Below are positions 1 to 14,694 of a stretch of DNA of 64,000 nucleotides, piece after piece. A model generated the notes under the pieces. It did not search any database. It was not told where the DNA came from and saw only the letters and a program-made list of their open reading frames with translations. A program made the translations under genes and the position numbers. Positions within the stretch are counted from its first letter, which is position 1. Each line of letters starts with the position of its first letter. The DNA is taken from positions 186,001 to 250,000 of IMG/VR virus record IMGVR_UViG_3300027816_000052; one strand, written 5' to 3'.

Positions 1-2
1 TT

Positions 3-806
3 TTTCAATCCTCATTACCTAGAGCGGGGTCAACTTTATTACAAAATATAATAGGACAAAATCCAAATTTTTATGTAACACCGACTTCTGGTGTTCTTGA
101 ATTGGTTTATGCTGCTAGAAATAATTATACAAATTCACCAGAATTTAAAGCACAAGAATATGAATTAATGAAAAGTGGTTTTAATAAATTTTGTCATGAC
201 GGTATGTTTGGTTTTTTTAATGCAATTACAGATAAAAAATATGTTTTAGATAAAAGTAGAGGGTGGGGAATACATTACAATTTTTTAGATGGATTTTATC
301 CAAATCCAAAAATAATTTGTATGGTTAGAGATTTACGAGACATATTTTGTTCTCTTGAAAAAAAGTTTAGGGAAAATCAGCATATGGATTCCGGTTTAAT
401 AGACCACTCAAAAATGCTAGGCACAACAACCGAGAAAAGAGTTGATATTTGGGCAAATAGTCAACCAGTTGGTTTAGCAGTTGAAAGACTATATCAAATT
501 TTTAGGGAAGGAAATAATCAAAAAATGCTTTTTATAAGATACGAAGATTTGGTAACTAACCCAAGAAGAGAAGTTGAAAGGATTTATAATTATTTTGAAT
601 TACCAACTTTTTATCACTCTTTTGATAGAATTGATCAAATAACAAAAGAAGATGATTCTGTATATGGAATATATGGCGACCACACAATCAAAACAAAACT
701 TGAATTACCAAAAAGTAACGCAAAAGAAATCTTAGGTGAGGGTGTTTGTAATTGGATTCAAGACCGTTATAAATGGTATTATGATATTTTTTATAGAAAC
801 CTTTGA
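3..806 (+). CDS. Sulfotransferase family protein (5'-partial; the frame is open from the window edge)
   Basis: Frame 3 is open from base 3 and reads FQSSLPRAGSTLLQNII (PAPS-binding motif), upstream of the track's TTG start at 102. It also has LDKSRGW, IICMVRDLRD and FIRYEDLV. Confidence 0.85.
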   Translation, partial: FQSSLPRAGSTLLQNIIGQNPNFYVTPTSGVLELVYAARNNYTNSPEFKAQEYELMKSGFNKFCHDGMFGFFNAITDKKYVLDKSRGWGIHYNFLDGFYPNPKIICMVRDLRDIFCSLEKKFRENQHMDSGLIDHSKMLGTTTEKRVDIWANSQPVGLAVERLYQIFREGNNQKMLFIRYEDLVTNPRREVERIYNYFELPTFYHSFDRIDQITKEDDSVYGIYGDHTIKTKLELPKSNAKEILGEGVCNWIQDRYKWYYDIFYRNL

Positions 807-1783
807 GTGAATTATTATTTGTATCGGCACAACATGATGTACCTTACTTCCATTGGCAAGCAGAGGTATATATAAATAATTTTATTGAAAAGGGAGTACC
901 CCCAGAAAATATTCATGTTATTTTTTCTCTTCATAATGGCGCGGACAAACCATCTAAGGGTGCTAGGACGCTAAAATTAAAATATGGTAATGTTCATTTT
1001 TACAAAGATGATAGAGAAAAAACTCATTATATTCCAAGCATAAAACCATTTTTAATTTCAAAGTGGTTAAAAGAAGAACCAAGCAGAGGTAATTTATTTT
1101 TTTTACATGATTCCGATATTCTATTAACCAGAATTCCTAATTTTTCAAAACTTTTAGATGACGATATTATTTATATGTCTGATACTGTTGGATATATAGG
1201 TTATAGTTACTTAAATGAATGTTCTAAAAGATATGAACAAAAACATCCAATATTATCTGAAAATAAATTAATCGATGAAATGTCGGAAGTTATTGGATTA
1301 CATCCTGAAACAATAAGGATAAATCAAAAAAATTCAGGCGGTGCTCAATATGTTTTTAAAAAACAAGAATGGAAATTATGGGATAAAATCCATAAAGATT
1401 CAACTGAATTATATGATAAACTTTTAAGTTTTCATAAAAAATATCCAATTTCTCCCGGTGAAATACAATTTTGGACCGCTGAAATGTGGTCCATTCTATG
1501 GAATATGTGGTATGCGGGGTATAAAACCGAAGTGGTGAATGAATTAAATTTTTCTTGGGCAACCGATGACATTCACAAATATGAAACAAACCCAATTTTT
1601 CATTTAGCTGGAATTACCGAACAACAAAAAAACGAAAGATTTTATAAGGCGGATTTTATTAATAAAAATCCGTTAGACTCATTAAGAAATAATATTGATT
1701 TTTTTGATTATGTTGATAAAAATAATGCAACATATAAATACGTTGAAAATATGAGGTTGCTTGTTAAAAAACAAGGTTACTGA
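803..1783 (+). CDS. Putative O-glycosyltransferase resembling plant hydroxyproline O-arabinosyltransferase / peptidyl-serine galactosyltransferase (HPAT/SERGT)
   Basis: Motifs PYFHWQAEVY, YIPSIKPFLISKWL, DxD-like HDSD and WTAEMW match my recollection of that family. Confidence 0.55.
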   Translation: MSELLFVSAQHDVPYFHWQAEVYINNFIEKGVPPENIHVIFSLHNGADKPSKGARTLKLKYGNVHFYKDDREKTHYIPSIKPFLISKWLKEEPSRGNLFFLHDSDILLTRIPNFSKLLDDDIIYMSDTVGYIGYSYLNECSKRYEQKHPILSENKLIDEMSEVIGLHPETIRINQKNSGGAQYVFKKQEWKLWDKIHKDSTELYDKLLSFHKKYPISPGEIQFWTAEMWSILWNMWYAGYKTEVVNELNFSWATDDIHKYETNPIFHLAGITEQQKNERFYKADFINKNPLDSLRNNIDFFDYVDKNNATYKYVENMRLLVKKQGY

Positions 1784-1807
1784 TTATTTATGTTTAAAGA
1801 ATAGAAT

Positions 1808-3658
1808 ATGGCTGATTATCAACTTAGAGATTGTGCAAATAATGATTATCTATTCATTTTAAGTGCATATACGTTAACCTCCCTATCAACAGGGTCAACA
1901 TATTTTATTGAATATACCGGAAACACATCGAATGGAGCGCAACCATACTCTGGTTGTTCTACTGTCGTAAATTTTTCAGGCTCCGGATATACCTTTGAGG
2001 GTTCTTTTGTTACAGTAACAGCGACATATACTTCATGTGAAGAGTGTTTAAGTGCTAATACTCTTTGTGATATTGGAAAATATTGCTTAAATACAAATTT
2101 TGTAGATACAATAAGTTATGACGGTGATTATCAAGTGGTTGGTTCATATAATGGTAATTATTTTTATACTGCAACAACAAGTGGAGTAACCGCAGTTGTT
2201 TATTATGACGGTAATAAATGGTGTTTGTCTAGTTCATTGGGTGGTTCATGTATTTTATTTGGTGCTGAACCTTGTCAATCAATATGTCCAGATATATGTG
2301 ATGATATATTTTTTACAGGTCAATGCCCAACGACAACCACAACAACTACGTGTCTAATTAATTTTGATGCGATTTTTGATTGCACACCAACGCCAACACC
2401 TTGTCAAATATGTTGTATATGCTCACCATCTTCTTGTGATTGGCAACCATATACTGGTACATCATGTGTTTGTATTCAGACAACGGCGGCAACAACACCA
2501 AATTCAGCAACCACTTACAGTGCAATTAGTCAAACTTATTTTGAATATTCAGAATTTGGAACTTTTATTTATGATTCGGGTTATTCAATTGACGGTACTG
2601 GTACCACTGTTTCATATTTAACAGGAACAACAGTTTGGGAAAATACGGGAAATACTTCAGGAAATACTATAATAGATGGTCCATTAAATAGATCGGGTAT
2701 TTGGACAACATTAACAGGTGGAACAGATTTACCAGAGGATACTTGGATTGGTTATTCTTTCTGCATTGAATCAACATCGGCAAAAACTTATTATGTTGGT
2801 CTAGGTGCTGATAATAAGTTCTCATTTAGACTTAACGGGCAAACAGTTGTTCAATCTATTTGGAATGATACAACATCATTCAAATATTGGCATGTTTATC
2901 CTATTGATGTTCCTCAGGGAACAAACGTCATTGAATTATTTGGTTTAAATACTAGTTCCGATGCGGCATTTGGTTGCGAAATTTATGATAATACATTATC
3001 TGAATTGACCGCAGCAACGGTTTATAGTGATTTAAATATTATTTATACAACATCTTCACAAATTGGCGGTATTTTTGATTTGGTTGCTGATTCTGGGTTT
3101 ACTTATTTAACTTCAGGCTACACATGTCCATCTGGTTATGTCTATCAATCTTGTAGTGGTAATTGTTTATCATACACAATATGCGATAACGCCATTACAC
3201 CCACACCAACACCGGTACCAACATCGACACCATTACCAAATCCATGTTCAGCAACAAGTATTGATATAACAATTACAGCAATAACATCAATTACAACGAC
3301 AACAACCACATCAACAACAACAGTACCAACAGTTGGACTTAGCGGTAGTAGTGTATTTGAATTAGTTAATACCGTATTTATTTGTCCTGATGTTGTTAAA
3401 AAATTACAAAGTTGTACAACAGGACAAATTTATTATACTGTTGATAATTTAGTTACCGGAACAACATACGTTCAGACTGGAGAAACGATTAATGCATTAT
3501 TTAATGGTGAATATGATTGTGCAACTTATCTTGAGGATGTTATGAATATTTCACCAAATACTGTTGTGACTGAAATTAATGCGGTATTCTGCGATTGTAA
3601 TAACTGCGTTCCGGCAACAACCACAACAACATCAACTACAACAGATTGTTGTCCATAA
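1808..3658 (+). CDS. Cys/Thr-rich probable virion (tail/fibre) protein with a beta-sandwich domain and mucin-like linkers
   Basis: 616 aa with poly-Thr and PTPTP tracts, many Cys, and a YVGLGADNKF...WHVYPI domain. Confidence 0.6.
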   Translation: MADYQLRDCANNDYLFILSAYTLTSLSTGSTYFIEYTGNTSNGAQPYSGCSTVVNFSGSGYTFEGSFVTVTATYTSCEECLSANTLCDIGKYCLNTNFVDTISYDGDYQVVGSYNGNYFYTATTSGVTAVVYYDGNKWCLSSSLGGSCILFGAEPCQSICPDICDDIFFTGQCPTTTTTTTCLINFDAIFDCTPTPTPCQICCICSPSSCDWQPYTGTSCVCIQTTAATTPNSATTYSAISQTYFEYSEFGTFIYDSGYSIDGTGTTVSYLTGTTVWENTGNTSGNTIIDGPLNRSGIWTTLTGGTDLPEDTWIGYSFCIESTSAKTYYVGLGADNKFSFRLNGQTVVQSIWNDTTSFKYWHVYPIDVPQGTNVIELFGLNTSSDAAFGCEIYDNTLSELTAATVYSDLNIIYTTSSQIGGIFDLVADSGFTYLTSGYTCPSGYVYQSCSGNCLSYTICDNAITPTPTPVPTSTPLPNPCSATSIDITITAITSITTTTTTSTTTVPTVGLSGSSVFELVNTVFICPDVVKKLQSCTTGQIYYTVDNLVTGTTYVQTGETINALFNGEYDCATYLEDVMNISPNTVVTEINAVFCDCNNCVPATTTTTSTTTDCCP

Positions 3659-3681
3659 ATGGTTAAAAAAACTAAAATATA

Positions 3682-6318
3682 ATGTCTTATCAATATTGTA
3701 GTGGTGGTTCTTATTGCTTTTCTTCAAACACTACTAGTGTAACAGCAAGTACTATTGGTTGTTTATCTAAAGTAGATAATGTTCAATATAGTATTAATGG
3801 TACAAGAATCTATAATACAAATTTTACTAATGAATCGATTTATGCTGAATTTCCATCTGACCCCGGATTTTTGGGTATTCAAGCGAATTTAACTTCACCA
3901 GCAACTCAGTGGGGATCAACAGGAAATTCAATTTTTGGTCCCATGAATAGACAAGCTGTTTGGTATGACGGAGATTGCAATGGGTCAACAGAAATAATTT
4001 CAGGTGAATTAACTCTTAGTTATTATTTTTATAATTCAGGAACAACAAATCAGTATTATCTAGGTTTTGGGGCTTGGATTTATCCAACAGGACAAATAAA
4101 TTTAACAATAAATAATGATATTATTTTATCTGGTGATGCGTCTATAATTGGTTCAAATTCACAACTCTATCATAGATTTTGGCACATAATTCCAATTACT
4201 TTACTATCTTGTGATAATCATATTAATTTAACAATTACTTCGTCAGGTATTATTCAAAATGCGGTTGGTTTAGTAATATATGATAGCACATATTCTGAAA
4301 TTATTAATGCGACTAATGATAATGATTTGGATATTATTTATAGTACAAATTCTTTATTAACCACAGCAGGAAAAACTGGACCTTTTGTTAAGGCGGGATG
4401 TCCGTCAGGATACATGTTAAGCGCAAATACGCTTACTGCAACTTGTATAACAACAATTTATACTGGTTGTACCTGTAATTGTTGCGATAGATACCAAATT
4501 GGTAGAATATTTGGAAATGATAATTTTGTGTATAATGATTGTAATAATCAACCAAAAATTATAACAAATTTAAATGCTGGTGAATCAATACAAATTTGTG
4601 CATGTTCTATAATAACTCCTAAAACACTATTGGGTAATAATACTTGGAGTGCGGGTAATGGTCAATTTAGAATTGTTTTAATAACATCTTGTGATAGTAG
4701 TTGTATACCAATTCCCGATGGTCCTCCCCCAACACCAACACCAGAACCAACTTGTTCTGATTGTGGATTTACAATGATTTCAGTTGGTGATAGACATACG
4801 GTGGGTATTAGTGGTGATACATTATTTTCTTGGGGAAGCAATTCAGTTGGTCAATTAGGTTTAGGATATACTGGCGGTTCTTTCTATATACCACAACAAA
4901 TGATAGACCCAACAAGTGGTGCATACCCTTGGGTTTATGTAGAAGCTGGTTTAGAATCAACATTTGCAATCAATTCAAATGGGGATTTATTTGTTTGCGG
5001 TAATTCTTCCTCAAATAATGGTGGAGATCAACTAGGATTAAACGATGGTATATCTAATATTGATACATTAACTCAAGTCACCTCACCAACCCCAAATGGG
5101 TGGTTAAAAATATGGTCAAAAAATACAGCAACAATTGCTCTTAGAAGTAATGGTACAATTTGGGGAACAGGTTTTAATGAAAAATATCAATTAGGTTTAG
5201 GTGATAATTTAGATAAAATGCAATTTACACAGATTGGTTCTGATACAGATTGGGAAGAAATTGCTAGAGGATTATTTCATACGCTTGGTTTGAAAAATAA
5301 TGGAACTATTTATTCTTGGGGAACTAATTTAACAATTCCTCAGAGAAACCCATTAGGATTAGGTGCGGGACCAGCTAATCAAGAAGCTCAAATACCAACA
5401 CAAATTACAATACCAACATACCCATTATATTCAAATAGTGTTGTGTTTAATCAAATATCCGCAGGAAATTATCATTCCGTTGCATTAGCTGATAACACAT
5501 CAATATGGGGATGGGGACAAAATACCCAAGGTCAGTTAGATTGCTTTAATTGTGGTTCGGTTGATAATTCAAGACCGTTTCCTATGGATGGTGGAATTTC
5601 TGTAAATCCACCAAGTTCTCAATCTGAAGGTGCTAATACAAATTCAGGATATACATCAGTAATAGCTGTTGGTGATATGACATTAGCCATTACGTCTGGT
5701 ATAACTTTAAATTTTGCACCATTTACTGCACCAAATGGTGTGAATTGGACACCGAATTTAAATGGTGACAGAATTTGGACTTGGGGTGAAGGATATGGAT
5801 CAAATGTAAAAACACTTTTACAAGACAATATTGATAGAATTAATTTAGAAACAAAAAATGATTGGTGTTATGTCTGGGCTGGTGGTCAAGCGGAACAAGG
5901 CGGCATTGGAACTCAAAACTTAGTTTTTTTCGCAAAAGATATTAATGGTACAATATTTACATGGGGTACCAATTCATACGGTCAGTTAGGCGTTGGACAA
6001 AACCCAATTTGTCCTGTTTGTGATAATGACTATGTTAATCCAATTGGGTTGTGTTTTAACTCAATAGATTCGGAATGTCCATGTCCTGATTGCGAATGTG
6101 TTACATATACTTTAAGCAATTATTCTACACTTGAAGTACCGTTTACTTATATTGATTGTAATAACACATTAATAAATTCAATATTAGGTAGAGGTGGTCT
6201 TGGTCCATCGACAACAACTGTCACAATTTGTGCTTGTTTAAATACAATAGTTATTGATGAAAATATCAATCCTAATTTTGTTAATATAACAACAGATCAA
6301 ACCCCTTGTGAATCATGA
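3682..6318 (+). CDS. RCC1-repeat protein, probable virion/adhesion protein
   Basis: Repeated WGSNSVGQLGLG, WGQNTQGQL, WGTNSYGQLG and ISAGNYHSVAL motifs. Confidence 0.75.
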   Translation: MSYQYCSGGSYCFSSNTTSVTASTIGCLSKVDNVQYSINGTRIYNTNFTNESIYAEFPSDPGFLGIQANLTSPATQWGSTGNSIFGPMNRQAVWYDGDCNGSTEIISGELTLSYYFYNSGTTNQYYLGFGAWIYPTGQINLTINNDIILSGDASIIGSNSQLYHRFWHIIPITLLSCDNHINLTITSSGIIQNAVGLVIYDSTYSEIINATNDNDLDIIYSTNSLLTTAGKTGPFVKAGCPSGYMLSANTLTATCITTIYTGCTCNCCDRYQIGRIFGNDNFVYNDCNNQPKIITNLNAGESIQICACSIITPKTLLGNNTWSAGNGQFRIVLITSCDSSCIPIPDGPPPTPTPEPTCSDCGFTMISVGDRHTVGISGDTLFSWGSNSVGQLGLGYTGGSFYIPQQMIDPTSGAYPWVYVEAGLESTFAINSNGDLFVCGNSSSNNGGDQLGLNDGISNIDTLTQVTSPTPNGWLKIWSKNTATIALRSNGTIWGTGFNEKYQLGLGDNLDKMQFTQIGSDTDWEEIARGLFHTLGLKNNGTIYSWGTNLTIPQRNPLGLGAGPANQEAQIPTQITIPTYPLYSNSVVFNQISAGNYHSVALADNTSIWGWGQNTQGQLDCFNCGSVDNSRPFPMDGGISVNPPSSQSEGANTNSGYTSVIAVGDMTLAITSGITLNFAPFTAPNGVNWTPNLNGDRIWTWGEGYGSNVKTLLQDNIDRINLETKNDWCYVWAGGQAEQGGIGTQNLVFFAKDINGTIFTWGTNSYGQLGVGQNPICPVCDNDYVNPIGLCFNSIDSECPCPDCECVTYTLSNYSTLEVPFTYIDCNNTLINSILGRGGLGPSTTTVTICACLNTIVIDENINPNFVNITTDQTPCES

Positions 6319-6527
6319 TACAAGTAACAATAAATAATATAACAGGTCAGACACCATATGATATTTATGTTTGTGATTCTGATGAAGATAACTGTTTTTG
6401 GATAGCAACAATTTCATCATTACCATATGATTTTATTATACCACCACCGTATGATATTATGGAAACTTTTTGTATTAAAGCGGTGGATGGTAATGGATGT
6501 GAAATAATAAATTGTCAAACACCATAA
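6315..6527 (+). CDS. Small Cys-containing probable structural protein
   Basis: 70-aa ORF coupled to both neighbours. Confidence 0.6.
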   Translation: MIQVTINNITGQTPYDIYVCDSDEDNCFWIATISSLPYDFIIPPPYDIMETFCIKAVDGNGCEIINCQTP

Positions 6528-6528
6528 A

Positions 6529-8430
6529 ATGGGATTAATAGGTAGCGGAACAACTAATGAATGTAAAGTGGTAACAATTTTTCCACTGGGTGTTGAGTGT
6601 AATACAACAAATCCGTCAACATCACTTGCACTTGACGGTATCGCGTCATTAATAATTACAGGGGGAACAGCACCATATAATATACAATGGAGTAATGGTG
6701 CAACAAGTCAAACTTTATATGGTCTTGGTGGTGGTGAATATACCGCAACCGTTACAGATTATTACGGTGATTTTACCTCAGTTACCACTTGTGTTTTAAT
6801 ACAACCAACAACAACCACAACAACATATACAACAACGACAACAACAATACCTTATACCTCAGGTGTTACTTTTTGTTTAAGTAGATGTAAAACTAATATC
6901 TGTGATAATTTTACATTCCAAGCCGGAAATATTATAAATGGATATAATTCTTGGACATCAAGCACATTAACAGTTTATTATGATATAATAACTAATAGAT
7001 GGATTTTTGATGGTTATACCGCACCATTAGGCTACAATGCTGGTATTACATATGCAAATGACCCACCAACGGCTAATCCACCATTATCTTGGTTGGTTGA
7101 AGGTTCAAATTATAGACCTGAGGTTTATGCTGTGGTGGGAAATTGCGGTTCTCAGACAGCAACATTTTCTAGGTCGATAACAAATTCAGCTTGTCAATCT
7201 TCAAAAGACGGATCAATAATTGTAACCCCTAATGGTGGTTCCGGTTCTTATTTATTTTCAAAAAATGGTGGATTAACCTATCAATCATCTCCTGTTTTTA
7301 GTAATTTAGATTCTGGGTCATATACAATAGTAATTAAAGATACTGTAACAAATTTAACAAAATCTGATGTTGTGGTTGTATCGAACACAACAAATACAAG
7401 AACTTTTAGTTTGAACTTCTCAACAACAAGTCCAACAACAGTATATACACCACCAACTAATGTTTATGATATAATTCAGCAATTCTCACAAACGAAAGAA
7501 ATTATACCATTTGTAATCACACCAAACCCAATATTACAAGTTGGTGAAACTTTAACTTTTGATTTTGACTTTAGAACTAATACTAGTTTTCAGTCTCCGG
7601 GTAATGCTGTATTTACAAATAACTTATTATTATATAAAAACGGTAATTTATTAACAGGTTTAACGTCTACAATAACTAATACCACCGTTGGTTCCGGCGT
7701 TTGTTCAGCAAATACACTAACATCTGTAACGTCTATAACACAATATAATTCTGTTTCATTAACATATGGTGATACATTAAGTGGTAGTGTATATTCAAAC
7801 ACATCATTATCAGCAACATCGTCTGTATTAGGTTGTACATCGTCAGCAAATAATCTTGTGTCATATGGAACTAAAAATTTAACAATCACACCACAAAAAT
7901 GTCGCTCAATTAGTTCCGGATTGGTAAAAAATACACAATTCACAAACAATTTAAATTATATTTTACCGCCATTAAATATATCATTTACAAACAAATGGTT
8001 AACAAATACCGAATCAGCACTTAGTGGATTTACATATGGCGGAAATGTAAATAACCCAACATCTCCGGGTACAACACCAAAAATATCATATAATTTTACA
8101 ACAGGTTGTTTAATACAAAATACTAGTTGCTTCCCATTAGCAAATACTGTAAATGGTGGACCATTAACCGGAGTTACCACAAATCAATTAACGGTACAAG
8201 CTGGAACAAGAGGGGGTATTATAAATTTATGGTTACAATTAGGTGGGCTTTTAAGTGGTGGTGCATGTGCAAAAATATTTGGAACATTAAAGGTTTCTAT
8301 AAATTCTGGCGCATATACTACTTTAACGACATTAAATGGTGGTTTAGGTACATGCTCAACAACATATTCATATGTTATTCCATTAAATGCAAATTCTATT
8401 GAATTTTTATGGGAACAAACGAGAATCTAA
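6529..8430 (+). CDS. SprB-repeat-containing probable virion/adhesion protein
   Basis: ITGGTAPYNIQWSNGATSQTLYGLGGGEYTATVTD and NGGSGSYLFS...FSNLDSGSYTIVIKD are SprB-type repeats. Confidence 0.7.
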   Translation: MGLIGSGTTNECKVVTIFPLGVECNTTNPSTSLALDGIASLIITGGTAPYNIQWSNGATSQTLYGLGGGEYTATVTDYYGDFTSVTTCVLIQPTTTTTTYTTTTTTIPYTSGVTFCLSRCKTNICDNFTFQAGNIINGYNSWTSSTLTVYYDIITNRWIFDGYTAPLGYNAGITYANDPPTANPPLSWLVEGSNYRPEVYAVVGNCGSQTATFSRSITNSACQSSKDGSIIVTPNGGSGSYLFSKNGGLTYQSSPVFSNLDSGSYTIVIKDTVTNLTKSDVVVVSNTTNTRTFSLNFSTTSPTTVYTPPTNVYDIIQQFSQTKEIIPFVITPNPILQVGETLTFDFDFRTNTSFQSPGNAVFTNNLLLYKNGNLLTGLTSTITNTTVGSGVCSANTLTSVTSITQYNSVSLTYGDTLSGSVYSNTSLSATSSVLGCTSSANNLVSYGTKNLTITPQKCRSISSGLVKNTQFTNNLNYILPPLNISFTNKWLTNTESALSGFTYGGNVNNPTSPGTTPKISYNFTTGCLIQNTSCFPLANTVNGGPLTGVTTNQLTVQAGTRGGIINLWLQLGGLLSGGACAKIFGTLKVSINSGAYTTLTTLNGGLGTCSTTYSYVIPLNANSIEFLWEQTRI

Positions 8431-8452
8431 ATAATTATAGTAAAGGATATTG

Positions 8453-10789
8453 ATGTCATATATTTTAAAAAATACAAATAAAATAGTAAATACCCAGATT
8501 ACAGATGTGGGTAGAAGAAAACTATCACAAGGGAAATTTAAAATAAAATATTTCCAAGTCGGTGATAGCGAGATATTTTATAATGCCATTTCTGGATATA
8601 ATCAAAGTGATAATTTTATTTTACAACCACAATTTAATTCACAAAATGACACAGGTATACCTGAAAGTAATAAAGCAAATATTAAATATCCGTTTTATTT
8701 AGATGAAAATCTAAATAATACTTATGGTTTACCTTATATGAGTTCAGACTTTGATTCTGTATTTGAAAATGTCCCATCTAGAGGATTTTTTACTGGTTCT
8801 AGTGGGTCTTGGTCTGCAATAACTCAAGCGGGATATTTAGTAACATCAAATTATTATATTGATTTATCCTCAGTAACCGGAGGAACAAAAATAACAGTAA
8901 TTAGTGGGTTTTGTAATACAACAACACCAATTGTCTTTACCGGTTGTTGTGATCCAATAACATCAACAACCACAACGACAACAACGTCAACAACCACTCT
9001 TGGTCCTTGTGATTTAACCGGTACAACAGCAACAACTACTTGTGTAATAAGTGGTAATACAAGAGAAGAGGGTGTACCCATCGTTGGTGATTTTGTAACG
9101 ATTATTTTTGATTGTAACGCTGATTGTGGTGAACTTGGTAGTTATCCAATCTTAACATATAGAATATGTTGTATATTAAATGATGTTTTTGTATTGGATA
9201 GGGAAATACCTGACTTAGCATCATTAGGTTATACTGGACAAGCACAATTATTAATTTATCCATCTGGGTTTACGGGATTTTATGATTACGAAACACCCGA
9301 ACAATATTGGAATCCTGAAACTATAAATTTTGAAAGTAGTTGTGACATCTCTAATGATTATGTTAAGATTTGGAATATGGCAATTCCTTGGAGTGAATCG
9401 CCAGCAGGTATTTTTTCTTCAAAAACAAAAGATGTTAATTATTTTGCTAGTAAAAATTATCTAGGTTCAAAAGAATATTTTGGATATCAAACAAACTCTG
9501 GTCAAAAATTTATTAATTCTTCTGGAATTACCACCACAACGGATACTTTTTACTACAATTCTTTTGATGAACAAATTTATGTTGAACCAAAAGACCAGAA
9601 AGCAATTGCAATAATTCATTATACAAATCAAGGAATTGATTTTGAATATGGTGAAAAATTTGCAACACAAGAACTTAATGCTGAAACATCTGGAACAACA
9701 GGATTAGCACAAAACTTTAAATTAGATATTCCTTGGTTATTATGGCACAAAACAACAGGTAACACAATTGGTGAAACATTCTATATTGATCCTCCGGGTT
9801 ATAGTGGATTAAATGTTTGTTATATGGTAACTGAAAGGTATGATATGGTTTCTCAGGGTATGAGGTATTACCATCTTTGGGATTTAAATCCAGATTCGAA
9901 TGGTAATTTGAATAGGGTTGGGAAGGTTTACCCGGATTCTAAAATGGTAATCATTGATGATGAAGAAATTATTGCTGCAATGTCTTATAAAGCAAACAGA
10001 AACTGGACATTACCAGCACCGAATATTAGTTTACTTTCACCAAATTTATGTCAAAACTATTCATCAATTAATGAGGGGTTATTAACTAATAATCAGGAAT
10101 ATTTGTGGTTAACATATCGTTTTGATAATAGTACTTTTACAAATTCATTGCATTGTAACTATTATAGTGTAATACAAGGACCAGACCAAGAATGTGACCC
10201 AACACAAAAAAATATTGTTGTTAGATTTGGTGACGAATTTCCATTCTTAAGAACTGGTACAACATGTAATACCGGATTTTATGCTGAAAAAATAATAATT
10301 TTAGCTCAAAAAGTTATTGGAAATCAGAGACCTTCCCCAACTAACTGGAAAGAAATTGATGTTACTAATCAAGTTTCCGCTTCAACTTTATCATCTGGAT
10401 ATTTAACAGTTAATTCATTAACTACAACTTCATTTATAATTGATAAGATGTTATATGATAATGGTGCAACATATAATTTAGATTCATACATTTCATTACC
10501 CGACCTTAATGAAACCAGTAATTGCTTAAATTTTGGTGATGAATATTATTTCTATGGTAATATTGAAACAGATATACAATCAACCATTTATCAGATGAAA
10601 TATGTTGTTAATTTAACAAATAATCAGTTTAAAATTAGTAGTAACCCAACATGGTCAGCAAATACTTCAACATATGTTACTGAAATTGGTTTATATGATG
10701 AGGATAAAGATTTAGTGGTTATTTCTAAATTACAGTCGCCACAAGTAAGAGAAGGCATACAACAATTCGCAGTTTCATATATATTTTAA
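8453..10789 (+). CDS. Probable baseplate/tail structural protein, paralog A
   Basis: C-terminal YVTEIGLYD...LVVISKLQSP motif typical of tail collar/baseplate proteins. Collinear with the next gene. ATG at 8453. Confidence 0.6.
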   Translation: MSYILKNTNKIVNTQITDVGRRKLSQGKFKIKYFQVGDSEIFYNAISGYNQSDNFILQPQFNSQNDTGIPESNKANIKYPFYLDENLNNTYGLPYMSSDFDSVFENVPSRGFFTGSSGSWSAITQAGYLVTSNYYIDLSSVTGGTKITVISGFCNTTTPIVFTGCCDPITSTTTTTTTSTTTLGPCDLTGTTATTTCVISGNTREEGVPIVGDFVTIIFDCNADCGELGSYPILTYRICCILNDVFVLDREIPDLASLGYTGQAQLLIYPSGFTGFYDYETPEQYWNPETINFESSCDISNDYVKIWNMAIPWSESPAGIFSSKTKDVNYFASKNYLGSKEYFGYQTNSGQKFINSSGITTTTDTFYYNSFDEQIYVEPKDQKAIAIIHYTNQGIDFEYGEKFATQELNAETSGTTGLAQNFKLDIPWLLWHKTTGNTIGETFYIDPPGYSGLNVCYMVTERYDMVSQGMRYYHLWDLNPDSNGNLNRVGKVYPDSKMVIIDDEEIIAAMSYKANRNWTLPAPNISLLSPNLCQNYSSINEGLLTNNQEYLWLTYRFDNSTFTNSLHCNYYSVIQGPDQECDPTQKNIVVRFGDEFPFLRTGTTCNTGFYAEKIIILAQKVIGNQRPSPTNWKEIDVTNQVSASTLSSGYLTVNSLTTTSFIIDKMLYDNGATYNLDSYISLPDLNETSNCLNFGDEYYFYGNIETDIQSTIYQMKYVVNLTNNQFKISSNPTWSANTSTYVTEIGLYDEDKDLVVISKLQSPQVREGIQQFAVSYIF

Positions 10790-10792
10790 GAT

Positions 10793-13144
10793 ATGGCATA
10801 TATAATTAAAAATACTTCAGGTTTATTAAATACAAGATTAACTGACGTTGGTAGAAGAAAGTTATCGCAAGGTAATTTTGTAATTAAGTATTTTCAAATT
10901 GGTGATAGTGAAGTTTGTTATGATTGTGTTCAAAATTTAAATCCAAAAAATAATTATGTAATTGAGCCAGCGTTTAATTCACAAAATAATGTTGGTGTTC
11001 CGGAAAGTAATAAACAAAATATTAAATATCCCTTTAAACAAAGTCCAACAACAACAAATACTTTTGGTATTGGTAATTTTGATTCTGTCGTTTCACCAAT
11101 ATATAATAGTGCAGCACCTAGAGGATTTTTTAAAGGTGAAGAAGGTAGTTGGTCAGCAAATACTGATTATGGATATTTGGTAACACCAAATTATTATATT
11201 GATATTACAACATTAACTGGGGGAACGAATCAAATATTGCTAATTAGTGGTACTTGTGATACATTAATACCACCAACATCAGATGATTGTTGTTCACCCA
11301 CACCAACACCAACTCCTCCACCAACTCCTCCACCAACTCCAACATCCATTTGTGATACGCCAACACCAACACCGTTTTGTACAACAGGACCATCACCGGG
11401 AGTTGGAATACCGCAAGTGGGTGATTTTATTACCATAATTTATGATTGCTGCGGTGATTGTGGAAAGATTAGAAATGGTTATACTATATTAACCTATAAA
11501 ATATGTTGTTTAGATAATTTAGGTACAACCCTAACTTTAGATAGGGATTTACCCGATTTCGCAAGTTTAGGTTTTACGGGTGATGCTAGAGTCTTAATTT
11601 ATCCATCTGAAATATCAGATTTTTATGGTACGTTTATTCCAAATGAAATTACTGACCAAGATTTAATTAACTATGAAATTCCTTGTGATATTTCAGATGG
11701 TGTAATAAAAATATGGAATATGAATATTCCTTGGAGCGAATCACCAGCGGGTATTTTTTCATCGGTAACTCAGGATTATACAACATATAATAGTAGAACT
11801 TATTTAGGGTCAAAAGAATATTTTGGATATCAATCGGCTAATGGACAAACATTCCTAAACTCATCATATGAAAAATTTAGTTCAGATACGTATTACTATA
11901 ATTCGTTTGATGAGCAAGTTTATCTCCAACCCAAAGACCAAAAAGCAATATCGCTAATTCACTATACGAATAATTCTGTGGATTTAATCTACGGTGAAAA
12001 ATTTGCGATGAATCCTATTGACCCAACAGACGAGGGCGCAACAGGTCAAGCAATAAATTTTAAATTAGAAATACCTTGGTTATTGTGGCATAAATCAACT
12101 GATGGTAAAATAGGTGAAACCTTCTATGTAGATCCACCGGGTTATAATAAATTAAGTGTAAATTACATGGTATCATCTAAAAATGATGATATGAATGATC
12201 CGGGTTTAAGATATTATCATCTTTGGGACATAAATCCAGATTCAAATGGTAATTTGAATAGGGTCGGTAAAGTTTTTCCCGACTATAAGATGGTAATTAT
12301 TGACGATGAGGAAATTATTGCAGCTATGTCATACAAAGCAAATAGAAATTGGACATTACCGGCACCTAAACTATCCTTAATTAATTCAAATATTTGTGAT
12401 GGTGATATGGGTACAACAACAGGTATTTTAGAAAATGATAATGAATATCTTTGGGTTACATATCGCTTAGGTAATCAAACAACAAGTGCGTTTACAGAAT
12501 CTTTACACTGTAATTATTATACATCAATACAAGGACCAAAGACCGGTTGTACAATAAATAGTCAAGATGTTTCTATTAGGTTTGGATTAGAATTTCCATT
12601 TTTAAATCAACCGACCGGTAGTTGTACATATGGTTTTTTTGCTGATAGCATGAGTATTTTAGCTCAAAAAGTTACTGGTGATACTAGACCAAACTCTGAA
12701 AATTGGATTGAAATTGATGTAACAAATCAATTAACATCGAGTATGATTGGTGGTTATATTACACAATCAGGACTTACTGCGACAACATTTGTTGTCGATA
12801 TTGATTCATATACCGGAGGAACCACATATGAACTCAATTACGTAAACTTACCATCATTAAATGATAATGGCGAATCCTGTTTAAATTTTGGTGATGAATA
12901 TTATTTCTATGGTAATCTAAAAACAGATATTGAAGCAACCATTTATGAGATGCGTTATGCGGTTAATTTACCAAATCAACAATTTACTGTAAGTACTAAT
13001 CCAACTTGGGGTAATGAAAAAAAATCATTTATTTCAGAAATTGGGCTTTACGATGAAAATAAAGATCTTATACTTTTAACAAAACTACAATCACCACAAT
13101 TAAGACAAGGTGAGCAGCAGTTTTTGATAAAACTTGATTTTTAA
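10793..13144 (+). CDS. Probable baseplate/tail structural protein, paralog B
   Basis: Long identical blocks with paralog A (e.g. GRRKLSQG, IIDDEEIIAAMSYKANRNWTLPAP, CLNFGDEYYFYGN). Confidence 0.6.
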   Translation: MAYIIKNTSGLLNTRLTDVGRRKLSQGNFVIKYFQIGDSEVCYDCVQNLNPKNNYVIEPAFNSQNNVGVPESNKQNIKYPFKQSPTTTNTFGIGNFDSVVSPIYNSAAPRGFFKGEEGSWSANTDYGYLVTPNYYIDITTLTGGTNQILLISGTCDTLIPPTSDDCCSPTPTPTPPPTPPPTPTSICDTPTPTPFCTTGPSPGVGIPQVGDFITIIYDCCGDCGKIRNGYTILTYKICCLDNLGTTLTLDRDLPDFASLGFTGDARVLIYPSEISDFYGTFIPNEITDQDLINYEIPCDISDGVIKIWNMNIPWSESPAGIFSSVTQDYTTYNSRTYLGSKEYFGYQSANGQTFLNSSYEKFSSDTYYYNSFDEQVYLQPKDQKAISLIHYTNNSVDLIYGEKFAMNPIDPTDEGATGQAINFKLEIPWLLWHKSTDGKIGETFYVDPPGYNKLSVNYMVSSKNDDMNDPGLRYYHLWDINPDSNGNLNRVGKVFPDYKMVIIDDEEIIAAMSYKANRNWTLPAPKLSLINSNICDGDMGTTTGILENDNEYLWVTYRLGNQTTSAFTESLHCNYYTSIQGPKTGCTINSQDVSIRFGLEFPFLNQPTGSCTYGFFADSMSILAQKVTGDTRPNSENWIEIDVTNQLTSSMIGGYITQSGLTATTFVVDIDSYTGGTTYELNYVNLPSLNDNGESCLNFGDEYYFYGNLKTDIEATIYEMRYAVNLPNQQFTVSTNPTWGNEKKSFISEIGLYDENKDLILLTKLQSPQLRQGEQQFLIKLDF

Positions 13145-13148
13145 TTTC

Positions 13149-13748
13149 ATGGCAAAAACAACAAAAAATAGCCCAAAAGTTCTTGGTTTAGATGTATCAA
13201 CAAAGACAATTGGATGGGCGTTATTTGATATAAAAAATAAAGAGCTTTTAGAATTAACACATGTTTCACCAATAGTTAAAGAAAAAACTGAAGATAAAGT
13301 TAGAGAGCTATTACTTAAAGCGGACGTGTTTAAAACAAAATTAATTGAATATAAAAATATTGGAATTACTAAAGTAGTAATTGAAGAACCTCTATTAAAT
13401 AGTAATAATATTTATACCATTGGGATATTACTAAGATTTAATAGTTTTATTACAAAAATAATTTATGATGAACTTGGAATTACCCCAGAATTCATTTCAA
13501 CATATGACTCAAGGAAATTTGCATTTCCTGAATTAGTTAAACAAAATGATAAGGGTAAGTTTGTTCTATTTGGTGGCTTACCTAAAGATATTGATAAAAA
13601 ACAAATAATTTGGGATTTAGTATCCAGAAGAGAACCTCAAATTACTTGGTTATACAACAAAAAAAATCTAATAAAAAAAGAGTGTTATGATATGAGCGAT
13701 GCTTATACCTGCGTTTTAGGTAAAATGAATGAGTTGAAGATTTGGTAA
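13149..13748 (+). CDS. RuvC-like Holliday junction resolvase
   Basis: VLGLDVSTKTIGWA, VVIEEP and DMSDAY acidic motifs. Confidence 0.75.
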   Translation: MAKTTKNSPKVLGLDVSTKTIGWALFDIKNKELLELTHVSPIVKEKTEDKVRELLLKADVFKTKLIEYKNIGITKVVIEEPLLNSNNIYTIGILLRFNSFITKIIYDELGITPEFISTYDSRKFAFPELVKQNDKGKFVLFGGLPKDIDKKQIIWDLVSRREPQITWLYNKKNLIKKECYDMSDAYTCVLGKMNELKIW

Positions 13749-13776
13749 TTTAGACTTTCTTTTCTATATTTTATTT

Positions 13777-14694
13777 ATGGAAAATGAAAAAGATGTATTA
13801 TTAGAGATACTAAGAACTATTTTAGGTAAAGAAAAGAATTATTATAATCTTAAACACCAAATTACTTTTGACTGTCCTGTTTGTAGTTATGAAATTAAGG
13901 GGTTAGAACAAGGTGATGGAAAGGGTAATCTTGAAATAAACACTGAAAGACTTATTTATAAATGTTGGTCATGTGGTGATAGTCACGGTACACACGGTCC
14001 AGTAGGTAAACTAATTGATTTATGGGGTAATAAAAAACAAAAAAAGATTTTTGATTTAATTAGACCTAAAGATGATGAGACAGTAAAGCCAATAATTCAA
14101 AAAATTAGGTTACCTGAAGGTTATATTAAATTTAAAGATTCCAATCCGATTCTTATAGCACATAAAGAAGCATATAATTATCTAAAAAAGAGAGGTGTTA
14201 CAGATGATATAATTGAGAAGTTTGATATTGGGTATACAGTAGATGGGGACTTTAAAAATAGAATAATAATTCCTTCATATGATTCAAATAATAATTTAAA
14301 TTATTTTATTGCAAGGTCTTGGGTTAAGACGAAAATGAAGTATAAAAATCCTACAATACCTAAAGAAACTATAATTTTTAATGAAAGTAGGGTTGATTTT
14401 AATAAAGATATTTATCTTTTAGAGGGTGCTTTCGACTCTATTTTTGTTGATAATAGTATACCTTTATTGGGTAAACATGTTAGTCCGTTACTTTTTGAAA
14501 AACTTTATAATGATGCTAAGAAAAATATTATTATCGCATTAGACGGGGACGCATTTAATAATGCACAAAAGTTATTTCATGAATTAAATGGGGGTGTTTT
14601 ATTTGGTAGAGTTAAATTATTAGAATTACCAAAAGATAAAGATGTTGCGGATTTAAGGGGACAAATAAATGAATTTGAAATTTTTATAAAGTAA
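13777..14694 (+). CDS. dnaG: DNA primase (zinc finger + TOPRIM)
   Basis: CPVC...CWSC zinc finger, RIIIPSYD, LLEGAFD and ALDGDA. Confidence 0.85.
   Translation: MENEKDVLLEILRTILGKEKNYYNLKHQITFDCPVCSYEIKGLEQGDGKGNLEINTERLIYKCWSCGDSHGTHGPVGKLIDLWGNKKQKKIFDLIRPKDDETVKPIIQKIRLPEGYIKFKDSNPILIAHKEAYNYLKKRGVTDDIIEKFDIGYTVDGDFKNRIIIPSYDSNNNLNYFIARSWVKTKMKYKNPTIPKETIIFNESRVDFNKDIYLLEGAFDSIFVDNSIPLLGKHVSPLLFEKLYNDAKKNIIIALDGDAFNNAQKLFHELNGGVLFGRVKLLELPKDKDVADLRGQINEFEIFIK

Follow-up and report, generated by a model that had tools for sequence, protein, structure and literature searches.

What does a jumbo phage do with a glycosyltransferase-like gene placed immediately before a row of large proteins rich in threonine and proline tracts, and which of these tracts, if any, would the enzyme act on? 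The window, that is, the whole stretch of 64,000 nucleotides analysed (positions 186,001 to 250,000 of IMG/VR record IMGVR_UViG_3300027816_000052), starts inside a sulfotransferase gene, which is followed by the gene for a 326-aa enzyme and, on the same strand, by five large proteins, here named B1 to B5 (Table). A sequence-only reading had noted this arrangement, with the two enzymes translationally coupled and the tracts flanked by Cys, and all of its elements could be confirmed at the positions it had given, so that the observation holds. Two corrections were needed. A third enzyme gene, encoding a 292-aa weakly GT9-like protein, precedes the sulfotransferase with a TAATG overlap but lies just outside the window, and the term "mucin-like" overstates the tracts, which are 6-18 residues long inside proteins of 600-880 aa.

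Table. Features at the start of the window (positions are those of the window).
Position	Strand	Feature	Observations
1..806	+	Sulfotransferase, 273 aa	Cut by the window edge, window 3-806 being its 3' part; ATG 16 nt upstream of window base 1 (L001:1485). Pfam Sulfotransfer_3 2.4e-19, Sulfotransfer_1 7e-14; phrog_27463 1.4e-41; NCBIfam NoeE-like 1.8e-7
803..1783	+	Predicted GT-A glycosyltransferase of the phrog_4417 family, 326 aa; proposed poly-Thr O-glycosyltransferase	TTG start overlapping the sulfotransferase stop as TTGA; homologs begin at the same residue
1808..3658	+	B1, 616 aa	17.7% Thr, 5.8% Cys. Poly-T runs at 2327-2350, 3293-3322 and 3617-3643 (the last C-terminal); (PT)3 at 2384-2401 and 3197-3214. 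Homologs in 60 of 80 related loci, all with tracts
3682..6318	+	B2, 878 aa, RCC1-type beta-propeller	One PPPTPTP tract at 4723-4743. Pfam WD40_RLD 6.6e-46 and RCC1 repeats. Found only in the clade that has the three-enzyme cassette
6315..6527	+	Small Cys-rich ORF, 70 aa	Paralogs interspersed among the large proteins in relatives
6529..8430	+	B3, 633 aa, SprB repeats	17.4% Thr. Two T6 runs at 6805-6846. Pfam SprB 4.9e-9
8450..10789	+	B4, 779 aa, paralog of B5	Poly-T insertion at 8960-8998, between conserved Cys
10793..13144	+	B5, 783 aa, 57% identical to B4	(PT)n insertion at 11294-11374, between conserved Cys

The five large proteins hold 12 of the 14 [TPS]6+ tracts found in all 271 ORFs of the 256-kb myovirus genome, and are Cys-rich, with 2.1-5.8% Cys against a genome median of 0.9%. 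Every tract in the window has a Cys within 8 residues on at least one side, while across 78 related loci 73% of 955 tracts have a flanking Cys on at least one side, and 197 have one on both sides against 65 expected. Codons within the runs are mixed ACN, so the runs are not simple DNA repeats. In an alignment of the B4/B5 family, which is virus-only, two hypervariable T/P insertions bracketed by conserved Cys were seen in a well conserved core, with PT and poly-T swapping at the same site. The sequence-only reading took the five proteins to be tail parts, but this role is inferred from their position and domain types and is not a demonstrated structural one: Pfam hits to sheath, gp25 and Baseplate_J lie upstream in one long same-strand block, and SprB, PKD and RCC1 domains occur in the neighbours. 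A model of B5 gave only weak fold matches to phage tail-tube, baseplate and tail-tip domains (Z 6-8), and the model itself was poor (pLDDT 53).

As regards the enzyme, the 326-aa protein has no Pfam hit, but its AF2 model is of high confidence (pLDDT 95.7) and shows a Rossmann-like GT-A fold. A search of the PDB with Foldseek returned 291 matches at E<=0.001, the listed ones being glycosyltransferases, although with TM-scores of only 0.40-0.45. The closest solved folds are retaining GT8/GT24 enzymes, several of which act on proteins or protein-linked glycans: glycogenin (Z 14.9), Skp1 AgtA (14.1), UGGT (14.0), LgtC (13.6) and GlyE (13.1). Over 138 diverse homologs at about 30-46% identity, D103 and D105 of a D-x-D motif are invariant and H267 is nearly so. 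Moreover, family members are fused to other glycan-building domains, namely Glyco_transf_7C, PF11397, O-FucT, GT6, GT2, GT25, a methyltransferase and Sulfotransfer_2. The nearest annotated look-alikes carry the HPAT domain PF23452, since a fold search of an atlas of predicted structures gave a TM of 0.72 over 290 residues to a Chlorophyta (green-algal) cluster that is 99% PF23452, as well as a viral cluster with 10% PF23452 members, and 19 of the 30 nearest named clusters by protein-language-model features, with scores of 0.96-0.97, carry this domain. Nevertheless, the Pfam HPAT model itself gave no hit at E up to 10 for the window protein, for 42 close homologs or for 72 diverse homologs, and none in a six-frame scan of the genome, so the placement in this superfamily rests on predicted structure and language-model features.

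The interpretation offered by the sequence-only reading is supported in part. It suggested that an HPAT/SERGT-like enzyme may decorate the T/P tracts of the tail proteins with (sulfated) O-glycans, and both the glycosyltransferase fold and a genomic tie to Thr-rich tracts of virion proteins in many phage lineages were borne out, whereas the mimicry of Bacteroidota polysaccharides and the shielding against proteases that it suggested are suggestions only. If the enzyme worked like plant HPAT proper, prolines in the (PT)n tracts would first be hydroxylated and the hydroxyproline then glycosylated. In favour of this are the similarity to HPAT-domain proteins, the Pro that often precedes the Thr runs, and a PF11397 transferase encoded elsewhere in the genome, this being the family that starts glycosylation of hydroxylated Skp1. 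However, no 2OG-Fe(II) prolyl hydroxylase (PF13640) was hit in the 85%-complete genome, many acceptor candidates are pure Thr runs without Pro, as in Lactococcus phage 1706, and (PT)n tracts do not co-vary with the enzyme. A hydroxyproline acceptor is therefore very unlikely.

Co-occurrence of the enzymes with T/P-rich genes across related phages had been named beforehand as a check, and five separate comparisons link the enzyme to poly-Thr; it co-varies with homopolymeric Thr runs and not with (PT)n. First, in 8 of 9 cultured-phage lineages with a homolog (Enterococcus, Staphylococcus, Clostridium, Lactobacillus, Lactococcus, Chryseobacterium), capsid, tail-tube, portal or decoration proteins carry poly-T, and the gene usually lies directly after such a protein; the exception was Lactobacillus phage 521B, with no poly-T within 20 kb. 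Second, a scan of a sample of IMG/VR contigs for ten ACN codons found the family in 8 of 118 loci, against 0 of 117 control loci holding ten GAN codons (Fisher p 0.0036), and in all 8 the gene starts between -144 and +16 nt from the end of a protein with several poly-T runs. Third, among B4/B5-centred loci of related jumbo phages, T6+ runs occur in 17 of 18 loci with the gene and in 6 of 50 without it (odds ratio 125, p 3.6e-10), these six having a single T6 run each, while (PT)3+ tracts occur in 18 of 18 and 49 of 50. The co-variation counts in general are not corrected for shared ancestry, and within the jumbo phages they may reflect only a few gain or loss events. Fourth, five 90-100% complete relatives lack the family entirely, in searches whose positive controls were detected, and show no T6+ run in that locus, although their (PT)n tracts persist. 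Fifth, in orthologous tail-tube and capsid proteins of Firmicutes siphoviruses, phiFL1A and R3.3, which have the gene, carry poly-T tails, while Javan47, 315.6, cIP1 and phiJL-1, whose whole genomes lack it, end at the same core motifs with no tail; R3.3, cIP1 and phiJL-1 are all in one genus.

The persistence of (PT)n tracts without the enzyme also speaks for a second alternative, in which all tracts are plain flexible or rigid linkers, never modified, and the glycosyltransferase acts on phage DNA bases, a host envelope polymer or a small molecule, its position among structural genes being incidental. Phage glycosyltransferases are best known for DNA glucosylation and serotype conversion (reviewed in PMC12619734), and the gene block ends next to a RuvC-like resolvase and a primase. 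This alternative, however, cannot explain why poly-Thr runs appear and disappear with the gene in unrelated lineages, nor why the gene sits directly after the poly-T protein in 8 of 8 sampled loci. In the Firmicutes phages the gene lies inside head and tail modules, not DNA-metabolism modules, and the model starts with a beta-strand at residue 5, with no N-terminal membrane helix such as a wall-polymer enzyme would often have. We consider this explanation unlikely.

With respect to the sulfotransferase, the full reading would be that the GT-A enzyme starts an O-glycan on the T/P tracts, the GT9-like enzyme extends it and the sulfotransferase sulfates the sugar, giving the tail proteins a sulfated, polysaccharide-like coat. 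The stop-to-start overlaps of the three genes, the conservation of their order in relatives at 65-75% identity from four independent assemblies, the fusion of one distant GT-A family member to a Sulfotransfer_2 domain, and the NCBIfam hit to NoeE, a glycan sulfotransferase, speak for it. Furthermore, in a complete relative (G001) the sulfotransferase and GT9-like genes sit inside an island of glycosyltransferases and methyltransferases next to a (PT)n-rich protein. Nevertheless, the sulfotransferase is always adjacent to a GT9-like gene in relatives and is linked to it rather than to the GT-A: the pair occurs directly upstream of B1 without the GT-A in one type of relative genome (G007-type), and 80 kb away from it in G001. 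Most phages with the GT-A have no such pair within 10 kb, since 78 of 80 GT-A-centred loci lack it, and three of four relative genomes with the GT-A searched whole lack it entirely. The sulfotransferase scored well above the Sulfotransfer_3 (PF13469) cut-off (70.9 bits against 27, and 70.4 bits in a genome scan), but its nearest solved relatives by sequence are tyrosylprotein sulfotransferases (TPST1/2, E 6.5e-5). The GT9 assignment is weak, the 292-aa protein scoring 16.5 bits against a PF01075 cut-off of 22 (E 0.0056), over its C-terminal 50 residues only, with PDB hits at E 0.69 and no similarity to the other GT9/TibC-like protein of the genome. Sulfated O-glycans are therefore one option among several, and the full three-enzyme reading remains doubtful.

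Taken together, we propose that the 326-aa protein is a soluble, metal-dependent GT-A glycosyltransferase of a phage-borne family, a divergent branch of the superfamily holding the plant peptide O-glycosyltransferases HPAT and SRGT1, and that it transfers a sugar from a nucleotide sugar directly onto the hydroxyl groups of consecutive threonines in poly-Thr tracts of virion proteins, in the infected cell before or during assembly. A rough probability of 0.6 is given to this reading. In this jumbo myovirus the acceptors would be the poly-Thr runs of B1, B3 and B4, which sit in loops, linkers and a C-terminal tail of Cys-rich proteins encoded at the far end of the baseplate and tail-fibre gene block, while in small Firmicutes phages they would be the poly-Thr tails of the major capsid and tail-tube proteins. 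In this view, the (PT)n tracts are ordinary linkers that do not depend on the enzyme, and the sulfotransferase and GT9-like genes form a separate two-gene accessory module, which has landed next to the glycosyltransferase in this clade and may extend and sulfate a glycan, this last step being the weakest. The analysis itself shows the predicted fold, the conserved catalytic motif, the gene order and overlaps, and the co-variation of the gene with poly-Thr runs; the acceptor, the donor, the timing and any sulfation are inferred, and the attachment of glycans to virion proteins rests on genomic association only, without biochemical evidence of any kind. No paper reporting glycosylation of these proteins was found for any phage carrying this family, in a literature search which largely excluded subscription journals.

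A broader reading, about as likely as not, is that homopolymeric Thr runs are a portable glycosylation tag in phages, read by a single, so far uncharacterised family of cytoplasmic peptide O-glycosyltransferases which coats capsids, tail tubes and tail-fibre proteins with sugars. This family, phrog_4417, which has about 950 clusters at 50% identity and occurs in phages from 36-kb Firmicutes siphoviruses to 300-kb aquatic jumbo phages, would be a viral and bacterial branch of the plant HPAT/SRGT1 superfamily, and in the present clade the paired GT9-like enzyme and sulfotransferase would further elaborate the coat. Glycosylated phage particles are documented only for a few groups, such as mycobacteriophages, where they affect antibody recognition. 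If the family really writes sugars on poly-Thr tags, virion glycosylation would be common in phages of enterococci, staphylococci, lactobacilli and lactococci, which are used or feared in therapy and dairy work, and in abundant environmental jumbo phages. In addition, a Thr run plus this gene would be a simple sequence rule to predict glycosylated virion proteins from genomes, the plant extensin-glycosylating enzymes would be linked to a large prokaryotic and viral branch, and a compact enzyme-and-tag pair would be offered for glyco-engineering, the proposal itself being directly testable in cultured phages that already exist.

Among known systems, the closest annotated family is that of the plant hydroxyproline O-arabinosyltransferases and peptidyl-serine galactosyltransferase (HPAT/SRGT1; CAZy GT95/GT96), with which the phage protein shares the GT-A fold and, as proposed, the addition of a sugar directly to a peptide hydroxyl in a low-complexity, extended tract. 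The plant enzymes are membrane-anchored Golgi proteins acting on hydroxyproline or on serine of extensin-type Ser-Hyp motifs, whereas the phage protein has no membrane anchor, would act in the bacterial cytoplasm, and has threonine in homopolymer runs as its likely acceptor. The GT8/GT24 retaining enzymes are the best solved structural matches (Z 13-15 over 210-245 residues), with a conserved D-x-D and a later His as in Mn-dependent GT-A enzymes; glycogenin glycosylates its own tyrosine, while AgtA, GlyE and the UGGT catalytic domain extend glycans already attached to proteins. The similarity is in fold only, as sequence identity is 7-12%, there is no Pfam GT8 (Glyco_transf_8) hit, and no solved chain was matched at the sequence level, even with a profile. 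For the Sulfotransfer_3 enzyme, the PAPS-binding (5'-PSB) loop PRAGST is shared with TPST1/2, but the match is weak (25 bits), covers the cofactor motifs and gives no indication of the acceptor, and the phage homologs are unstudied cyanophage and marine virus genes. Finally, mycobacteriophage virion glycosylation (Freeman et al. 2023, as cited in PMC12619734) reportedly involves phage-encoded glycosyltransferases and glycans on C-terminal parts of capsid and tail-tube subunits, and the Firmicutes relatives of the present enzyme sit next to capsid and tail-tube genes with C-terminal poly-T tails; in the phages studied here there is a recognisable sequence tag, the homopolymeric Thr run, and in the jumbo phage the putative acceptors are internal loops of tail-module proteins rather than capsid tails.

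The 256,029-bp IMG/VR virus record, of which bases 186,001-250,000 were analysed, has about 29% GC and is estimated to be 85% complete. Pfam identifies a tail sheath, a gp25-type wedge protein and a Baseplate_J protein upstream of the window, so this is a contractile-tailed jumbo phage, and from the baseplate genes onward a long run of large same-strand ORFs, several of them with PKD and SprB repeats and weak Por_Secre_tail hits, leads into the window. The SprB repeats, the fact that the nearest cultured carrier of the key enzyme is a Chryseobacterium phage, and the Bacteroidota homologs found in the ESM Atlas hint at a host among the Bacteroidota. An assignment to the 'moraphage' lineage was also considered, but heat-shock genes are reported in all members of that lineage (PMC12619734) and no HSP70 hit was obtained in this genome, so no such claim is made. 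No alternative genetic code was needed and no tRNA or tmRNA genes were detected in the window, which beyond 14.7 kb is a dense run of mostly plus-strand ORFs. The structural block ends abruptly at a RuvC-like resolvase (phrog_159/827) and a DnaG-type primase (phrog_47, 4e-42), a junction which is conserved in most relatives.

The sequence-only reading had described a sulfotransferase and an HPAT/SERGT-like transferase, translationally coupled and directly preceding five large proteins with poly-Thr and (PT)n tracts flanked by Cys, and this observation is accurate. The window opens inside a 273-aa sulfotransferase (Sulfotransfer_3, 2.4e-19) whose start lies 16 nt before the window and whose stop overlaps, as TTGA, the TTG start of a 326-aa ORF. 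After a 24-nt gap come five ORFs of 616, 878, 633, 779 and 783 aa, here called B1-B5, which hold 12 of the 14 T/P/S-only tracts of six or more residues in the whole genome and are two to six times richer in Cys than the median ORF. In the window every tract has a Cys within eight residues on at least one side, and the Thr runs use mixed ACN codons, while in 78 related loci 926 of 955 tracts lie in homologs of these proteins and of two neighbours, with Cys on both sides three times more often than expected. Nevertheless, the tracts are short (6-18 residues), so that the term 'mucin-like' was too strong, and a third enzyme gene could not be seen from the window, since it encodes, just outside it, a 292-aa protein with a weak GT9 hit that ends in TAATG with the sulfotransferase start.

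As regards the large proteins themselves, Pfam, PHROGs and NCBIfam gave nothing for B1, B4 or B5, and the Atlas search returned only unannotated viral clusters for B5. The structure prediction of B5 was poor (pLDDT 53), and its best fold matches, insertion domains of phage tail-tube, baseplate and tail-tip proteins at Z 6-8, fall within the stated noise range of the method and are not used as evidence of a fold. B2, an RCC1-propeller protein, occurs only in the clade that also has the trio of GT9-like gene, sulfotransferase and GT-A enzyme, which may reflect either a functional link or shared ancestry. In addition, the small Cys-rich ORF wedged between B2 and B3 has homologs (86 ORFs in 78 loci) scattered among the large T/P-tract proteins, some of them fused to larger proteins.

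Locations of features in the window, elsewhere in the same genome and in one relative
Sequence	Position	Strand	Feature
Window	3682-6318		B2
Window	6315-6527		70-aa Cys-rich ORF
Window	13134-14694		End of the structural block (resolvase and primase junction)
Own genome, outside the window	97,060-105,931		Second glycosylation island
Own genome	91,139		Multi-copy ORF family
Own genome	116,421		Multi-copy ORF family
Own genome	146,925		Multi-copy ORF family
Own genome	151,556	-	Multi-copy ORF family
Own genome	152,088	-	Multi-copy ORF family
Own genome	161,166	-	Multi-copy ORF family
G002 (294,914-bp relative, 98% complete), C1	268619-269587		Ortholog of the glycosyltransferase

The 326-aa protein has no Pfam or NCBIfam hit and belongs to PHROG 4417, of unknown function. 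A word search found 1,243 relatives, all unnamed, on contigs up to 329 kb, and with an alignment of 42 of them AlphaFold gave a model at pLDDT 95.7. Although sequence and profile searches against solved structures found nothing, Foldseek and VIA-align both place the predicted fold among GT-A glycosyltransferases, the best matches being glycogenin (Z 14.9), the Skp1 galactosyltransferase AgtA (14.1), the UGGT catalytic domain (14.0), LgtC (13.6) and GlyE of the pneumococcal serine-rich-repeat pathway (13.1). Residues D103 and D105 are invariant, and H267 nearly so, across 138 homologs of 30-46% identity, which is the pattern of a metal-dependent GT-A site. Since family scans left the protein open, an exhaustive profile search was carried out, and 952 clusters were found at E<=0.001, many of them 500-600-aa fusions. 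Of 72 members scanned against Pfam, 4 carry Glyco_transf_7C and single members carry PF11397, O-FucT, GT6, GT2, GT25, a methyltransferase or a Sulfotransfer_2 domain, which fits an enzyme that works within multi-step glycan building. The ortholog in the relative G002 carries one in-frame TAG, which could represent a pseudogene, a sequencing error or recoding.

The proposed relationship to HPAT enzymes, and with it the interpretation given by the sequence-only reading, was only partly supported. The Pfam HPAT model (PF23452) matches neither the window protein, nor 114 homologs, nor the genome in six frames. However, two other lines, both based on predictions, point the other way, since a fold search of the ESM Atlas returned a green-algal cluster that is 99% PF23452, at TM 0.72 over 290 residues, as well as a viral cluster with some PF23452 members, and a language-model feature search found PF23452 in 19 of the 30 nearest named clusters, at scores 0.96-0.97. 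The protein is therefore filed as a divergent relative in the HPAT superfamily, not as a member of the Pfam family. The model shows no membrane anchor, and neither a prolyl hydroxylase (PF13640), which was searched for in the 85%-complete genome, nor a nucleotide-sugar epimerase (PF01370) was found. A true HPAT-like mechanism thus lacks its hydroxylase and, moreover, does not fit pure Thr tails, so hydroxyproline is an unlikely acceptor.

The main result concerns which tracts go with the enzyme, and it rests on five comparisons. First, homologs of 30-37% identity occur in 77 cultured phages, and in eight of the nine lineages examined structural proteins (major capsid, tail tube, portal, protease or scaffold, and decoration proteins) carry poly-Thr runs, often at the very C-terminus, the gene usually following such a protein directly. 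Lactobacillus phage 521B was the exception. Cultured phages that carry the gene include Enterococcus phiFL1A and VPE25/vipetofem, Lactococcus 1706, Lactobacillus PLE3 and Chryseobacterium MA9V-3. In Lactobacillus phage LpeD, the 134-aa ORF directly upstream of the homolog is made of (PTTTTTTSSTT) repeats and is annotated in GenBank as 'major tail protein; GP2_EHV1B glycoprotein gp2', which looks like a similarity hit to a mucin-like herpesvirus glycoprotein caused by the Thr repeats. In a second step, working in the opposite direction, IMG/VR was scanned for ten consecutive ACN codons, and 8 of the 118 loci returned contain the family, against none of 117 loci with ten GAN codons (p 0.0036). 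The eight enzymes are only 32-57% identical to each other, and in every case the gene begins within -144 to +16 nt of the end of a large protein with several poly-T runs spaced about 90-100 residues apart.

Third, loci of related jumbo phages centred on the B4/B5 homolog were collected regardless of the enzyme. With the enzyme within 10 kb, 17 of 18 loci have T6+ runs (60 runs in all), whereas without it 6 of 50 loci do (one run each), while (PT)3+ tracts occur in 18 of 18 and 49 of 50, respectively. Fourth, five relatives that are 90-100% complete have no copy of the gene anywhere, although four genomes known to carry it were recovered in the same search, and their B1 and B3 homologs are full of (PT)n but have no T6 run, while their B4/B5 homolog lacks both T/P insertions. 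Fifth, a matched control in Firmicutes siphoviruses used tail-tube proteins 50-60% identical to that of phiFL1A. These end at the same core motif in Streptococcus Javan47 and 315.6, Pediococcus cIP1 and Lactobacillus phiJL-1, whose genomes lack the gene and have no poly-T tail, whereas phiFL1A and Lacticaseibacillus R3.3 carry the gene and have poly-T tails on both the tail-tube and capsid proteins, R3.3, cIP1 and phiJL-1 belonging to one genus. In addition, the alignment of B4/B5 homologs showed the tracts to be two hypervariable insertions between conserved Cys in an otherwise well conserved protein, with (PT)n and poly-T replacing each other at the same site.

Although these counts are not corrected for shared descent, the pattern recurs in lineages that share nothing else, and it is concluded that the enzyme's partner is the homopolymeric Thr run and that the (PT)n tracts, which the sequence-only reading had included among the candidate acceptors, are linkers independent of it. 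A role in DNA modification or in host-envelope modification does not explain the gain and loss of Thr runs with the gene, nor its fixed position after poly-T proteins. What the analysis itself establishes is the predicted fold, the gene order, the conserved residues and the co-variation of the gene with Thr runs, whereas glycosylation of those runs and the presence of B1-B5 in the virion are inferred, without biochemical evidence. A complex prediction of the glycosyltransferase with residues 70-130 of B3 scored 0.01, which counts neither for nor against binding.

The sulfotransferase and the GT9-like gene are adjacent or within 3 kb of each other in every arrangement seen. The order is GT9-like, sulfotransferase, GT-A in this phage and in relatives of 65-75% identity from four assemblies; it is sulfotransferase then GT9-like, directly upstream of B1, in genomes that lack the GT-A; and in a complete 318-kb relative both lie within 3 kb in a glycosyltransferase and methyltransferase island, 80 kb from the GT-A. 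So they form a module of their own that has been placed beside the GT-A in this clade. The first impression that these two genes were recent additions unique to this phage proved to be wrong, since the GT9-like gene has thousands of homologs at 62-84% identity and the pair recurs in other arrangements. Although the acceptor cannot be regarded as settled, the association with glycosyltransferases and a weak NoeE hit favour a sugar acceptor, while the nearest solved relatives of the sulfotransferase by sequence are tyrosylprotein sulfotransferases. In this context, the full sulfated-glycan pathway remains possible but is supported only by gene adjacency in one clade.

The genome also holds a second glycosylation island, with a 910-aa GT4 plus FkbM-methyltransferase protein, a 911-aa methyltransferase plus GT9 protein with a TibC N-terminal-domain hit, and a 415-aa PF11397 'GlcNAc' transferase (2e-76), followed by a 422-aa collagen-triple-helix-repeat protein with 38% Ser, and this may be a separate enzyme-and-fibre pair. 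Furthermore, a multi-copy ORF family whose members share the N-terminus MKKIKLTESDLYRI... is scattered through the genome.

In the literature searched, which omits most subscription journals, no description was found of this enzyme family, of its kinship to HPAT-type enzymes, or of poly-Thr runs or tails as its likely tag or as glycosylation sites. The finding is attractive, since cultured phages that carry the gene allow a direct test. Phage virion glycosylation is known in principle from mycobacteriophages (as cited in PMC12619734).
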